Virus record (IMG/VR): IMGVR_UViG_3300031857_000005
Span: 1 to 64,000 of that record
Reading direction: 5' to 3' (one strand)
DNA: 64,000 nucleotides
The translations under genes were made by a program, and so were the position numbers. The notes under the pieces are model-generated. The model made no database searches. It saw only the letters and a program-made list of their open reading frames with translations, and had not been told where the DNA came from. This document shows positions 13,603 to 59,585 of this stretch, one piece after another; position 1 is the stretch's first letter; each line of letters starts with the position of its first letter.

Positions 13603-13634
13603 AAACCCCACTTCAAATAAGAGTGGGGTTTTTT
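13603..13634 (+). terminator. intrinsic terminator
   Basis: AAACCCCACT...AGTGGGGTTT followed by a T run. Confidence 0.8.
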
Positions 13635-16545: not shown

Positions 16546-16995
16546 TTAATATTTTATTATTTCATAATTTTCTAAATCCAAGTTTTTCAAGGTAATCTCT
16601 TTTTCATAATTAAAAGTTAAATTTTGAATTATTGTTTGATCTAAATTAATATTTGATTTGTGTGTTTTTATTCTGATTATTTTAGCGTTATCATTTATTT
16701 TAACATCGGATAAAAACAACCAATCCGTATCGTAAAATAAATATTCATCAGAGGTTCTTATCCAATGTATATTTTTATCCTTTTTAAATTCCCCAATAAT
16801 ATTAACTAATCTACTCAATTCAATATATTCAGGTATATTCATCAAACCACCATCATTAAAATCTTTATTAAACAGATTATCCCAATTGTCATCAAACCCT
16901 TCCATGTTACCATGAAAATTAATATATTCTTTTTTATATTTATCTTTTATGGTTTCTTCCCTTAATATTCTTCTTATGGATTCTTGTAGGTTCAT
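16546..16995 (-). CDS. leader-family protein (MNLQE..RRILREE type)
   Basis: start re-assigned to MNLQESIRRILREE; minus-strand TATTTAT at 17002-17008. Confidence 0.8.
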   Translation of the reverse strand: MNLQESIRRILREETIKDKYKKEYINFHGNMEGFDDNWDNLFNKDFNDGGLMNIPEYIELSRLVNIIGEFKKDKNIHWIRTSDEYLFYDTDWLFLSDVKINDNAKIIRIKTHKSNINLDQTIIQNLTFNYEKEITLKNLDLENYEIIKY

Positions 16996-17053
16996 ATTAA
17001 AATAAATATCCAAAAATATTGTTTGGTAAATATAAAATGATTACTTTTGTAAA

Positions 17054-17590
17054 ATGAAAATGGACTTAACTAAACTTACAATGGACGAACTTATTTCTTT
17101 AAGAAATAAAATTGAAGGACTTATTCATTCATATGATGATGGGTATTTGTATATCTGTTCTGTTCGTCAGTTCGGTAGTGTGTGGGAAGAAAGACCAAGT
17201 AGTTTACATTCTTTAAAAGAACTTTGTGGTGAATACAATGGAGACAATGGTATTGTTGATGTATATACCAACAACCCAAATTTGAAATTCCCTGAGATGG
17301 ATTTTTATAATTATGGTGATGTTATGTATATCAAATCCGAAGATGATTATAGACAATGGAATAAGTACAATAAGGATAAAAACCTAATTGAGGATGTAAC
17401 ACAACGACTTGAAGATTGGGAAAATAAAGACAATGTTCCGTTTAGTTACCGTCCACATTTTGCTCCATTTTGGACAAGAGAAGAATTGAATGAATGGATC
17501 ACAGAGTTTGAAAACACTGTTTGGGATTTCACCCCACCAGTTTCAATGAAAGTAGATGAATATTATGATGATGAAAATGAACAAGATTGA
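17054..17590 (+). CDS. hypothetical protein
   Basis: TACTTTTG-taaa-ATG. Confidence 0.7.
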   Translation: MKMDLTKLTMDELISLRNKIEGLIHSYDDGYLYICSVRQFGSVWEERPSSLHSLKELCGEYNGDNGIVDVYTNNPNLKFPEMDFYNYGDVMYIKSEDDYRQWNKYNKDKNLIEDVTQRLEDWENKDNVPFSYRPHFAPFWTREELNEWITEFENTVWDFTPPVSMKVDEYYDDENEQD

Positions 17591-18182
17591 TAACATAGAT
17601 TTAATAAAACCATTATTGAATTTTTCACATTATGGTGACTTCTATATGTTATATGTATTTAAACGAAAGAAGGATCAACCGGAAGGTGAAAGGGATAATC
17701 ACCAATCAGTAAGAACAATTAAAACTTATTGTATTGAGTCCATCCCATATTTGGAAAAAAGATATGATGAGATTAAACAACTTTGTGAAATGTTTAAGGC
17801 TCGTGCATATATCCATGTCCAAAAACAAAACCACAAAGATGTGTCATTAAATATGTTGGCAATACTTGCCGAACGGATTAGAGACGGTGTATCAAACCAA
17901 AAAGGTTTATTTGATTCAGTTGTTGGGCAAATTAAAACTCAAGAGAAACGGTGGATTGTGGATATTGACGTAACCGATTTTCATGCCGTTACTGAACTAT
18001 CACAATTTATTAATTATCTTAAACCTGAAGGTAAAAAAATTGAAGCGGTTATACCAACAAAGAATGGGTGGCATTTGATAACTGGTAAGTTTGATGTTAA
18101 GACTTTCAAGGAGAGATTTCCTGATATAGACATCGCTAAAAAAAACCCAACATTATTGTATTATCCTGAAAGTTTGGGGTAG
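17577..18182 (+). CDS. conserved phage protein, possible AEP (primase-polymerase)-like fold
   Basis: WIVDIDV (DxD) followed by TKNGWHLI (S/TxxGxH-like); similarity judged by eye only. Confidence 0.4.
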   Translation: MNKIDNIDLIKPLLNFSHYGDFYMLYVFKRKKDQPEGERDNHQSVRTIKTYCIESIPYLEKRYDEIKQLCEMFKARAYIHVQKQNHKDVSLNMLAILAERIRDGVSNQKGLFDSVVGQIKTQEKRWIVDIDVTDFHAVTELSQFINYLKPEGKKIEAVIPTKNGWHLITGKFDVKTFKERFPDIDIAKKNPTLLYYPESLG

Positions 18183-18584: not shown

Positions 18585-19715
18585 ATGGAAAATCAAAATA
18601 GCGTAGCATATGTTGGAAAAATAGGTTCAGTAGTTGAAATACCAAATGCTGACAACATAGAACTTGTACTTGTTGGTGGATGGCAGGCGATAACCAAAAA
18701 AGGTGAATACCAAGAAGGAGATAAAGTTGTTGTTGCAACCACTGATGCGGTAATACCACAAGCATTGTCTGACTTGATGGAAGTGACTAACTACCTTCGT
18801 AAAGGACAACGAGTTAGAACCGTAAAACTTCGTGGATTTTATTCCGAATGTTTGTTAATACCATTCAAGTACTTGGCACCAAAATCATTGGTGAACAATG
18901 TTAATGAAGGTGATGATATGATGGAAATACTTGGAATAACCAAATACGAACCACCGGTTAAAATGGTTACTTTGGGTGGAGGTAAGAAAGTTAGATACCA
19001 CCAAAATCCAAACTTCCATATCTATCACAAATTCCCAAACATGAAGAATGTTCCTGATATGTTCACCGAAGAAGATGAGGTTGTTATCACCCGTAAAATA
19101 CACGGAACTAATGCCAGATTTGGAATAGTTAGAAAGAAAAAACTTTCTTTGTGGGATAGAGTGAAAAAGTTCTTCGGTAATGAGTGGGTTGAGTTTGAAT
19201 ATGTGTATGGTTCTCATAATGTGGAGAAAGGATCTGATTCTCAAGGATTCTACGATACTGATGTGTGGAGAGAAGTTGCCAACAAATATGACATACGAAA
19301 AAAACTTTGGGATCATGTTAAGGATACATATTACCCTGAATCTTTGGAACAAGGACTTACTATCTATGGGGAAATCTATGGTAAAGGAATCCAAAAAAAC
19401 TATGAATATGGTTTGGAGGAAATAAAGTTTGTTGGTTTTGATGTTGAAGTTGATGGTGTTTATCAACCACACCTTGAAGAAACCGTTCATTTTGATTGTT
19501 TGGAACTCCCACAAGTTGAAGTATTATATGAAGGAACTTGGAGTAAAGAAGAACAAGATAAATATGTCTTCGGTAATTTTATAAAAGGAACCAAAGTTCC
19601 TCACGAAGGTATCGTTGTTAAATCTGTGACTGGTGATCGTCATAAAGTTGCAAAGGTTATCAATCCTGATTATTTAATATATGGGGAGAAAAATAATGTT
19701 GGTGACTCCCATTGA
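18585..19715 (+). CDS. RNA ligase, DRB0094 / Rnl2-like family
   Basis: N-terminal OB-like IPNADNIEL..V.GW; TRKIHGTN adenylation motif; YGEIYG.GIQ, FDV, HEGIVVK, KVIN..YL. Confidence 0.85.
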   Translation: MENQNSVAYVGKIGSVVEIPNADNIELVLVGGWQAITKKGEYQEGDKVVVATTDAVIPQALSDLMEVTNYLRKGQRVRTVKLRGFYSECLLIPFKYLAPKSLVNNVNEGDDMMEILGITKYEPPVKMVTLGGGKKVRYHQNPNFHIYHKFPNMKNVPDMFTEEDEVVITRKIHGTNARFGIVRKKKLSLWDRVKKFFGNEWVEFEYVYGSHNVEKGSDSQGFYDTDVWREVANKYDIRKKLWDHVKDTYYPESLEQGLTIYGEIYGKGIQKNYEYGLEEIKFVGFDVEVDGVYQPHLEETVHFDCLELPQVEVLYEGTWSKEEQDKYVFGNFIKGTKVPHEGIVVKSVTGDRHKVAKVINPDYLIYGEKNNVGDSH

Positions 19716-20022
19716 TGGAGTCATCATTTTTTCATATAATTAAAAAAAGAAATTATGAGTAGTGTTAGAGTTTATGTGGACCTTGATGATGTCTACGATG
19801 AGATGGATAGAAGTGACAAAAGAACTATGGCTCAGTGGTTACACGATGACGGCATATTAGAATCACACCCAAATCCTGAAATAAGAAAAGTTGTTAGAGG
19901 TGATATAGAATCTCAAGGAGAAAAAGAATTAAGAGATAACCTCACAAAACTATGGAACAATTATTACCTACTAACAAACGAAGAAGAAGAATTAATTAAA
20001 AAACTTTCAAGTAGATTTTAAT

Positions 20023-20442
20023 ATGAGACATCACGCAAATTTCTTCATTAACCGACTTGCAACTGAATGGTTAAAAAATGGTAAATTGATTATTGGTTGT
20101 GATCTTGATGACACAATAATTCCATATAATGAAGAATTAAAAGAACATTGTCAAAAAGTTGTTGACTTGATTTTGGAATGTCAAAAAGAAGGTATTATAT
20201 TTTTAATTAATACTGCAAGAAGTGAACGACAATTGGAAACCGCAAAAGAACAAGTTGAAAAGTTGGGTATTGAAGTTCATGGGGTAAATCAAATGCATCC
20301 TGAGTGGGATAAACCATATGGGATGAATGGTAAGATATATGCAAACATATTCCTTGATGATAGAGGTGGAATAAAAAGTACATATTGGGATTTAAGTGAG
20401 GTTTTATCAATAGTAAAAAGAGAAAGAAGAAATGAAAAATAG
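20023..20442 (+). CDS. HAD-superfamily hydrolase-like protein
   Basis: CDLDDTI, NTAR, KIYANIFLDDR. Confidence 0.7.
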   Translation: MRHHANFFINRLATEWLKNGKLIIGCDLDDTIIPYNEELKEHCQKVVDLILECQKEGIIFLINTARSERQLETAKEQVEKLGIEVHGVNQMHPEWDKPYGMNGKIYANIFLDDRGGIKSTYWDLSEVLSIVKRERRNEK

Positions 20443-57178: not shown

Positions 57179-57490
57179 ATGAAAGAATTATTAGATGAAT
57201 TTATATGTACCGTTACTGAAGAAAACCGTACTATAACCCTGACATACTGTCATCCCACTTATTCCCACTCAGGAACTTGTGTATTTGAGTCACACCAAAT
57301 GAAGGGAACCTCCAAACCAATTGTTCAAAAGTTTTTAATCATGACGGGATGTGACATGGGGGATGTGATAGAATATATCTATCAGACAAGGGGATTATCA
57401 GAAAAAGATTTTGATGAGGTGAATATGATTATCAGGGAACACTCAAGGACTATAGTTGAGAAGGAGGATCCAGATCCTCATCAGTCATAA
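57179..57490 (+). CDS. hypothetical protein lacking alanine
   Basis: 103 aa ORF with no Ala, in the GC-dinucleotide-free zone. Confidence 0.55.
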   Translation: MKELLDEFICTVTEENRTITLTYCHPTYSHSGTCVFESHQMKGTSKPIVQKFLIMTGCDMGDVIEYIYQTRGLSEKDFDEVNMIIREHSRTIVEKEDPDPHQS

Positions 57491-57808
57491 TATGTTTTCT
57501 AATATAATTGGACACACAACCATTGGGGAAATACTTCAACATAAGGGAAGATACCAAGATGACAAGGGGAAAGATAATCCCCAATAGAAATAAAATGTAG
57601 AACATAACTAATCCTTAAATAAATAAATGATAAGTCCTGATATGATGAGGGATATGATACACACAACCAACATCCCCACGGTAACAACAGACTTCAACAA
57701 CATAACATAAAGATACAAAACAATTTGTGTTATTCCAACATCTTTTTATAAAAAGATTAAATGTGTGAAACAATTTAAATTACTCCGATATTTATTGTTA
57801 AAAAGATT

Positions 57809-58630
57809 ATGGGAAATTTATTTCAACAAATAAAAGATTCAGTAAAAGGACAGAAAAGTGATTTCTGTTCAAGATCCACAAGGGTTACACTACTAACTCA
57901 AGGTAGAGTTGAGTCAGATGAAATCACATATACAAACTGTTATGGAGTTTCATCAGGGATTACCTATTCTGACATACAACTAAATAATAACTATATCCCC
58001 GACTGTGTTAGAGGGGGAAGTCCAATTGTTTCTAAATCGGGGTATAAATATTTTGTTCAGTATGGAACAACCAATTGTGAAACTCCACCATCAGGGGAGA
58101 ATAAAATATTATTTCCTTGTGCAGGTTTAGGTGAAGTAGTTGTTGATACAACGGGATATAATCTAACACAAGGTAGTATATATGAAATGACACTTAATCC
58201 ATTAAATCCTGGACCAATACCTAGATTACAATGTTTTACAGTTGGAGAACAAACAAATCAACAAGCTGAGTATAACATTATGGGAATCAAGGGAACTGTT
58301 GAAGACTGTAATGTATGTGGAGGTCCACCAAAACCAACTGTAACATTCCCAACTTCAACACCAACACCAACTCTACCTACATATTTTTCATATATAGTTG
58401 GTGATACATCATATAATAATCAAATAGATGCTTGTACGCCAGGTGGGGGAACAATTACTGTTTATTCAAGTACTAATGATCCAATTGTTAATTCAACATT
58501 CTTATATAGTGATATACTATTAACAATACCATACAATTCAGAAGGTTTTGTTTATTACTCAGGAAAAGGAGACTCTGTAATCAGTACGGGATCTGATGGT
58601 AAACTCACAAGTTTTAGTCTTTGTACTTAA
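57809..58630 (+). CDS. Cys/Thr/Pro-rich protein, possibly virion surface
   Basis: paired Cys modules and PTSTPTPTLPT linker; TATTTAT at 57789-57795. Confidence 0.65.
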   Translation: MGNLFQQIKDSVKGQKSDFCSRSTRVTLLTQGRVESDEITYTNCYGVSSGITYSDIQLNNNYIPDCVRGGSPIVSKSGYKYFVQYGTTNCETPPSGENKILFPCAGLGEVVVDTTGYNLTQGSIYEMTLNPLNPGPIPRLQCFTVGEQTNQQAEYNIMGIKGTVEDCNVCGGPPKPTVTFPTSTPTPTLPTYFSYIVGDTSYNNQIDACTPGGGTITVYSSTNDPIVNSTFLYSDILLTIPYNSEGFVYYSGKGDSVISTGSDGKLTSFSLCT

Positions 58631-58634
58631 ATAC

Positions 58635-58668
58635 AATCCCCCACATTACATGGGGGATTTCTTTTTTT
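58635..58668 (+). terminator. intrinsic terminator of ORF 57809-58630, possibly bidirectional
   Basis: AATCCCCCA...TGGGGGATT followed by a T run. Confidence 0.8.
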
Positions 58669-58742
58669 ATATAAGCAGGTTGGAGTCCACCCTCTTAGAG
58701 AAGAACCTGTTTCCCTGACCCGTCTTCGGACTGAACCACTGA
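58635..58742 (-). ncRNA. putative ~100-nt structured small RNA
   Basis: promoter TTTG-N20-TACCTTTG (58778-58747), predicted +1 near 58742; stems UCCG-AAGA-CGGG and CAGGUU...AACCUG; ends in the AATCCCCCA/TGGGGGATT hairpin. Confidence 0.5.
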
Positions 58743-59084
58743 CAATACAAAGGTACGGATTATAATTGACACCACAAAACATTCCCCCATATATTTTATG
58801 TGAGTTATTAACAATGGGGTTGTTTACATATGTAAACTGATAGGGGGAGGTATTACTTATGAACATATGTTAATAACTTAATATCCCCTCCCTCAGATAG
58901 TGGCATACCCCCTATATTGGGGATTACCCCCTCCCCCCTCCCGTATGCCCCCCATATATGACATTTTGACAGGTAAAAAGGGGGGACAATCCCAAAAACA
59001 AAGTATTCGTAAAAAAAATTTTGGAAAAAATTTTTGGTATTTTTCCATTTCTATATTATAGGAATTTTTTATTATATTTGTATT

Positions 59085-59585
59085 ATGGAAAAAATCTGTA
59101 AAAAGTGTGAAACAGAAAAAGAATTGTCTTACTATAGAAAGGGGAGGACTACTTGTAAATTATGTGAAAATAAAATTAGGTATATACAAAAACAGGAAAG
59201 AAGAAAAGTGGATCCCCAATATGACAAAGAAATTAAGTCATATGATGTAATGAGAAAAAGGAAAAAAGAGAAGGAGAATCAACTAACGGGGTTTATTCAG
59301 AAGATGAGACAATCCATTAGAAAATCATTCAAAAGACAAGGGTATACAAAGAACTCAAGAACATATGATATACTTGGGGAATCTTGGGGGAATGTGAAAT
59401 TATATTTTGAGTCTTTATTCCAAGATGGAATGACATGGGATAATCATGGGGAATGGGAGATTGATCACATTATTCCATTATCAACATCCAATTGTGAAGA
59501 AGATGTTATTCGTCTATGTCATTACTCCAATCTTCAACCCCTATGGAAAAAGGATAATAAATTGAAGGGGTGTAAAATTCTGTAG
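59085..59585 (+). CDS. HNH endonuclease with N-terminal Zn finger
   Basis: CKKC...CKLC; GMTWDNHGEWEIDHIIPLS...HYSNLQPLW..DN..KG; TATATTTG-tatt-ATG. Confidence 0.85.
   Translation: MEKICKKCETEKELSYYRKGRTTCKLCENKIRYIQKQERRKVDPQYDKEIKSYDVMRKRKKEKENQLTGFIQKMRQSIRKSFKRQGYTKNSRTYDILGESWGNVKLYFESLFQDGMTWDNHGEWEIDHIIPLSTSNCEEDVIRLCHYSNLQPLWKKDNKLKGCKIL

Follow-up and report, generated by a model that had tools for sequence, protein, structure and literature searches.

Does a GC-rich intergenic stretch on the minus strand of a large phage genome, preceded by a host-type promoter and ending at a strong hairpin, correspond to an unannotated small RNA gene? The question was raised by a prediction made from the sequence alone, in a window of 64,000 nucleotides (the whole stretch of DNA analysed here) that forms the beginning of the 304,365-bp IMG/VR phage record IMGVR_UViG_3300031857_000005. 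By comparing the locus with related phage contigs, we find that it is very probably a real gene for a small folded RNA, although its transcription is inferred and not shown, and that it belongs to an undescribed RNA family found in dozens of phages of Bacteroidota, including one cultured Tenacibaculum phage.

Results

The phage genome has 31% G+C and nearly all of its genes run on the + strand. Shine-Dalgarno motifs are almost absent, with GGAG before only 5 of 344 ORFs, whereas the heptamer ATCTTTG is enriched 3.8-fold in intergenic DNA. The promoters of the phage read TTTG-N19-20-TAtnTTTGTa, and many + strand matches to TTTG-N19-20-TAtnTTTG are followed after 4 nt by an ATG. Full promoters of this kind at 13632, 14707, 15268, 22616, 25511 and 34611 (+) suggest leaderless early mRNAs for small ORFs, and 12 of the 23 + strand matches of the genome lie in the first 50 kb. 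The phage therefore uses Bacteroidota-type promoters and leaderless early genes, and its host is probably a member of the Bacteroidota. Freshwater phages of 200-307 kb with predicted Flavobacteriia hosts have been described as 'moraphages' (PMC12619734). The tRNA T-loop heptamer GGTTCGA occurs 19 times in the genome, 18 of them in intergenic DNA, so that the phage probably carries a tRNA cluster outside the window.

The original prediction of a promoter followed by a structured stretch holds with small corrections. On the minus strand, the -33 element TTTG (58778-58775) is followed by a spacer of 19 nt, not 20 as first stated, and by the -7 box TACCTTTG (58755-58748), in agreement with the promoter consensus of the phage. 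There is no start codon at the expected +1 (G58743), which is inferred from the leaderless ATGs that lie 4 nt after the box elsewhere in the genome, and a 74-nt stretch with 51% G+C follows (58670-58743). One G was missing from the RNA as first given, and the sequence reads GAGGGUGG. The hairpin at 58635-58659 is real, but it is first of all the + strand intrinsic terminator of a 273-aa gene (57809-58630), and on that strand it is followed by TTTCTTTTTTT. On the minus strand it is the probable 3' end signal of the RNA, which would then extend from 58743 to about 58625 and measure about 118 nt, although the U tract is weak there, as originally noted, and the position of the 3' end is only approximate.

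Taken alone, the site is not remarkable. The full promoter pattern occurs 17 times on the minus strand of the genome, against 10-17 in Markov simulations, and the 72-nt body folds no better than shuffled sequences on either strand (z of +0.66 and +0.59). No Rfam 15 model reached its gathering threshold in the window, a local scan up to E=10 found nothing relevant, and 16 related loci gave only one unrelated tRNA. ARAGORN found no tRNA or tmRNA gene in the window and none at the element in 69 loci; a cloverleaf-like minimum-energy fold appears only in some members of the family described below (for example locus L033; L numbers denote loci in other viral contigs), and its 'acceptor' pairing is lost in L047, L026, L059 and L061. 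Neither BLAST nor a covariance model found repeats of the element within the 304-kb genome, and a blastn search of GenBank phages with the 1.8-kb locus gave no match.

The comparative evidence, in contrast, does exceed chance. Homologues of the 273-aa protein led us to contigs in which that gene is only 52-89% identical, and in which the stretch from the terminator to the -33 element is nevertheless kept, with conservation ending exactly there. The terminator hairpin itself is conserved except for one loop base in relatives whose upstream gene is only 52-68% identical. Part of the conservation near 58766-58795 is explained by a + strand promoter, TTGACA-N18-TATATT, that lies back to back with the RNA promoter and overlaps the same conserved block. 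In relatives, TTGAC(A/T)-N17-TAATAT sits 11 nt before the next ATG, and genome-wide TTGACA-N16-18-TAnnnT occurs 9 times in the sense orientation upstream of ORFs and never in the antisense orientation, which suggests a second promoter class in a phage of a Bacteroidota host. The neighbouring region at 58780-59585, which comprises a 300-nt stretch rich in C5/G5 runs and an HNH/endonuclease VII-like gene (59085-59585, phrog_1035), is absent from relatives such as L019 and L021, where the next gene starts right after the divergent promoter, and looks like a homing-endonuclease insertion. Within this clade two RNA types occur, with different P1 and P2 sequences but with hairpins at the same places. 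Between the window and the relatives L012/L016, two substitutions turn an A-U pair of P2 (A28-U47) into G-C, and a 1-nt deletion sits in a loop.

Two exact-pattern scans of viral contigs with clade-specific strings returned only the same phage, but a pattern made from the nearly invariant 3' core (GAG..ACUCCAACCUGCC-UUAUA) hit 54 stretches of IMG/VR contigs with unrelated flanks, many of them from contigs of 150-340 kb, about five of which are chance hits inside genes. Of 45 distinct members, 32 carry a strict TAnnTTTG box (TATCTTTG 21 times and TACCTTTG 9 times) that places +1, usually a G, 45-81 nt before the end of the core, whereas the chance of such a box in a 50-nt window is 4%. The -33 TTTG is present in 22 of those 32, and several of the other members have one-base variants of the box. 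The family is also absent from 185,579 species genomes apart from short contigs of one Bacteroidetes MAG (one hit, on a 1.7-kb contig), and the other genomic hits of a 12-mer of the core are not family members. Short variants of 45-49 nt, lacking P1 and P2, sit in dense clusters in L032, L049, L057, L046 and L063, where convergent promoters on the other strand give transcripts that begin GAUGCCCUGGAG... and would overlap the 3' end of the RNA.

Segmentation of the members by eye and by RNAfold gave a common plan, a 5' hairpin (P1) followed by a three-way junction in which P0 closes P2 and P3. P1 (58722-58743, nt 1-22) has the closing pairs G1-C22, U2-A21 and C3-G20, a purine internal loop, and an upper stem of U6-G17, G7-C16 and G8-C15. 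In an 18-sequence MAFFT alignment (A3), pair 2 is UA in 15 sequences and AU in 3, and pair 3 is CG in 10 and UA in 8. The 5' strand of P0 (GGGU, 58718-58721, nt 23-26) follows directly and pairs with nt 68-71 (58673-58676); across the family GGGY pairs with GCYU near the 3' end. P2 (58697-58716) pairs nt 28-33 (AGGGAA) with nt 42-47 (UUCUCU) around an 8-nt loop, and all 6 of its pairs show changes on both sides across the family. The nearly invariant 3' core (58670-58694, nt 50-74) contains the small P3 GAG/CUC hairpin (nt 50-52 with 59-61), the junction strand CAACCU, the 3' strand of P0 and the UAUA tail, and ends in ...CCUGCUUAUA. In A3 this structure gives 94.1% paired cells, against 80.4% in shuffles (0 of 500 reached the observed value) and 43-56% when partners were slid, and eight pairs carry double changes, with 40 cells with double changes against 13.9 expected. 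A covariance model built from the alignment finds a single copy in the genome, at exactly 58670-58743 on the minus strand (67 bits, E=4.7e-15), and 55 matches in the fetched loci. Their alignment (A4, 54 sequences) gives the same picture, with 89.5% paired cells against 71.9% in shuffles, although this alignment is fitted to the model. P0 is paired in 100% of cells in A3 with one-sided changes only, while in A4 one of its pairs is GC in 24 sequences, GU in 16 and AU in 5. The columns of the 3' core are invariant in both alignments, although one relative, L017 (1408-1512), carries a 26-nt insertion there, a partial duplication with its own small hairpin, and still scores 53 bits. Since P0 and P3 hardly vary, the three-way junction rests on consistency rather than on covariation. 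The stems originally proposed (UCCG/CGGG, CAGGUU/AACCUG and CUC/GAG) are mostly wrong and are not the ones supported by covariation; a pseudoknot between the P2 loop (CAGGUU) and AACCUG is broken in L012, L023 and L041, and an alternative terminator hairpin (RGRGUAG with CUGCYUU) showed no consistent covariation.

Several lines of evidence indicate that the functional strand is the minus strand of the window and that the element is non-coding. An anchor test that uses only the predicted +1 and the first GGG finds the P1 closing stem in 16 of 24 members, against 0-3 of 24 when the partner is slid. The RNA strand folds more stably than its complement in 22 of 27 members (mean -19.5 against -15.9 kcal/mol, p=3e-5), and about a quarter of the paired cells are G-U, which would be A-C mismatches on the other strand. 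Open frames across the element lie in different registers in the window, L012, L016 and L019, and L017 has none, so that conservation does not follow the overlapping 79-aa ORF (58627-58866, minus strand). As for expression, four metatranscriptome runs hold small parts of the locus as Logan contigs, one of them a 178-nt contig equal to 58609-58786 (depth 2) and another a relative's element at depth 12. These contigs are unstranded, and the first reaches 43 nt upstream of the predicted +1, so it cannot be the small RNA alone and may be DNA or read-through. Several metatranscriptome contigs of one run (X3) share only 58925-58970.

Clustering of the ORFs around all copies showed that the RNA is usually syntenic with a strongly conserved protein of about 100 aa ('family 1'; 103 aa in the window, 57179-57490, + strand) with conserved Cys/His positions, which lies downstream of and convergent with the RNA in 25 of 34 copies that have enough flank. 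Starting from distant homologues of the protein, the RNA was found in 4 of 4 loci. Homologues of a 51-aa single-pass membrane peptide with an acidic tail (...TDEDLDP; 57450-57605, minus strand), whose gene overlaps the 3' end of the 103-aa gene, lie on the RNA strand between the two in 18 of 34 copies, while seven copies have neither partner. In the window clade the 273-aa gene is inserted between the RNA and the peptide gene, and the latter has its own box-like TATCTTTA at 57716-57709. The 103-aa protein has no Pfam, PHROG, PADLOC or PDB-sequence match, and a tblastn search of GenBank phages gave none. Its AF2 model is confident (pLDDT 87), with a predicted four-stranded sheet and two helices, but Foldseek against PDB and BFVD and a wide structural search (VIA) gave nothing above Z 5.6, the weak AcrF10 and AcrIIC2 rows at Z 4.5-5 being within noise. 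An 11-nt inverted repeat, AGTTATTAACA / TGTTAATAACT (58803-58813 / 58868-58878), lies beside the RNA promoter, and its only other copy in the genome (57135-57145) lies 34 nt before the start of the 103-aa gene. The 9-mer is found 40-100 nt upstream of the RNA start in 12 of 48 other copies, against 8% expected, and may be an operator.

A blastn search with a typical member touched the cultured Tenacibaculum phage Larrie (ON950054.1), in which the model finds three copies, at 18767-18836, 19396-19470 and 16916-16988. All are on the + strand, in large unannotated gaps (16737-17138, 18606-18904 and 19227-20364) between genes that all run on the - strand, and a further gap, 17383-17751, holds no copy detected at E up to 0.01. 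The first copy has TTTG-N20-TACCTTTG upstream and a clean hairpin terminator about 40 nt after the core. A 634-kb uncultured phage also has one copy.

Discussion

Our results support the core of the original prediction, an unannotated small RNA gene with its own host-type promoter, which host RNA polymerase would transcribe from a Bacteroidota sigma-A-type promoter (TTTG-N19-TACCTTTG). That the RNA is made early is inferred only from the promoter type, and the decoy role suggested at first remains a conjecture. With moderate confidence, we favour a free-standing RNA that acts in trans, with its almost invariant junction serving as a binding surface for a protein (the syntenic phage protein or a host factor) or for a small ligand, and not by antisense pairing to its neighbours. 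In the window clade, a convergent 273-aa gene and a bidirectional terminator separate the RNA from any gene on its own strand, and the fold is still kept by a compensatory change, while the three copies in phage Larrie lie between genes that all run the other way. This reading is inferred, however, and the 100-aa protein has no recognisable RNA-binding fold.

A less likely possibility, which remains open, is that the RNA is a cis-acting leader of a longer minus-strand transcript, such as a riboswitch-like attenuator or a put-like processive antitermination element, which would control read-through into the membrane-peptide gene. In most other phages this gene lies 40-350 nt downstream on the same strand, sometimes 40-70 nt after the core, and the window keeps the same order. 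About half of the members have a U run right after the P0 3' strand, and a three-way junction with invariant junction bases resembles an aptamer. However, in the window clade about 1.1 kb of a convergent gene and a bidirectional terminator lie in between, the peptide genes mostly have their own box just upstream, some copies lack both partners, and the copies in Larrie face genes of the opposite strand. No alternative pairing is supported by covariation.

It also remains open, though somewhat less likely still, that the element is a classical base-pairing small RNA in which the invariant single strand (CUCCAACCUGCC) would be a seed for a conserved host mRNA or stable RNA, or for a phage mRNA. 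An invariant stretch of 12-20 nt next to variable helices is typical of such seeds, and the RNA has its own promoter and terminator. Nevertheless, a duplex scan of the 304-kb genome found no convincing site apart from the RNA's own antisense; the next best duplexes, of about -28 kcal/mol, lie on an untranscribed strand or inside genes, and GC-rich intergenic sites near 103.2-103.8 kb came up. The same scan argues against an antisense, type I toxin-antitoxin-like RNA, since no complementarity to the peptide gene was found, and the RNA lies upstream of that gene on the same strand. The 12-mer complement of the core is present in only 17 of 61 Bacteroidota genomes, so it is not a universal rRNA or tRNA site, and part of the 'seed' is paired in P0 and P3.

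DNA-level signals alone, such as a bidirectional terminator, divergent promoters and operator sites, or a replication origin, are an unlikely explanation. The + strand terminator and TTGACA promoter flank the block, the AGTTATTAACA inverted repeat lies next to it, and A/T-rich palindromes follow the core in many members, but compensatory changes in P1 and P2, strand-specific G-U pairs and a -7 box at a fixed distance cannot be explained in this way. A CRISPR-repeat mimic (a solitary repeat, mini-array or RNA anti-CRISPR) is very unlikely: the 5' 30-35 nt of some relatives look like a Cas6-type repeat, a hairpin followed by (AUU)GAAAC, and L021 reads ...CCCCGAUGUGGGGAUUGAAAC, but the 'GAAAC' is the 3' strand of the P1 closing stem and covaries with the 5' end (GUU/AAC, GUC/GAC, GAC/GUC), the 'spacer' is the invariant part and the 'repeat' the variable one, and there is no second copy or array in the phage genome, host arrays not having been searched with the P1 sequence. 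Finally, the 79-aa ORF, or the small + strand ORF, can be practically discarded as the real gene, since the 79-aa ORF, although open in the window, has no family hit and runs through the promoter and the terminator hairpin, and one-nucleotide indels between close relatives shift the open frames.

Orphan structured RNA motifs with covariation, unknown function and a phage association have been found by comparative genomics in Bacteroidetes and in phages (Weinberg et al. 2010, PMC2864571; Fremin and Bhatt 2021, PMC8040213). None of the 4227 Rfam 15 models matches the element in the window or in the 16 related loci, and no paper was found to hold the core sequence in a relevant context, although a match to an unnamed candidate of those surveys cannot be excluded.

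Small RNAs of phages that infect Bacteroidota are essentially uncharted, and these hosts lack Hfq and Shine-Dalgarno-based initiation. The covariance model obtained here describes a feature that gene callers currently miss or mis-call as small ORFs. As a tentative possibility, the RNA could be the nucleic-acid component of a conserved three-part phage cassette, together with the 100-aa protein of unknown fold and the 50-aa membrane peptide, in which the three-way junction would be a specific receptor, either for the protein (a new small phage RNP) or for a small molecule (a new free-standing or attenuating sensor RNA), and which phages of Flavobacteriia and other Bacteroidota would use early in infection for host takeover or counter-defence. 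The family is widespread, occurring in dozens of freshwater and marine phage contigs from 30 kb to over 600 kb. It carries a strong host-type promoter and keeps a 20-nt core nearly invariant across phages whose proteins have diverged to about 50% identity, which points to an important and conserved molecular partner.
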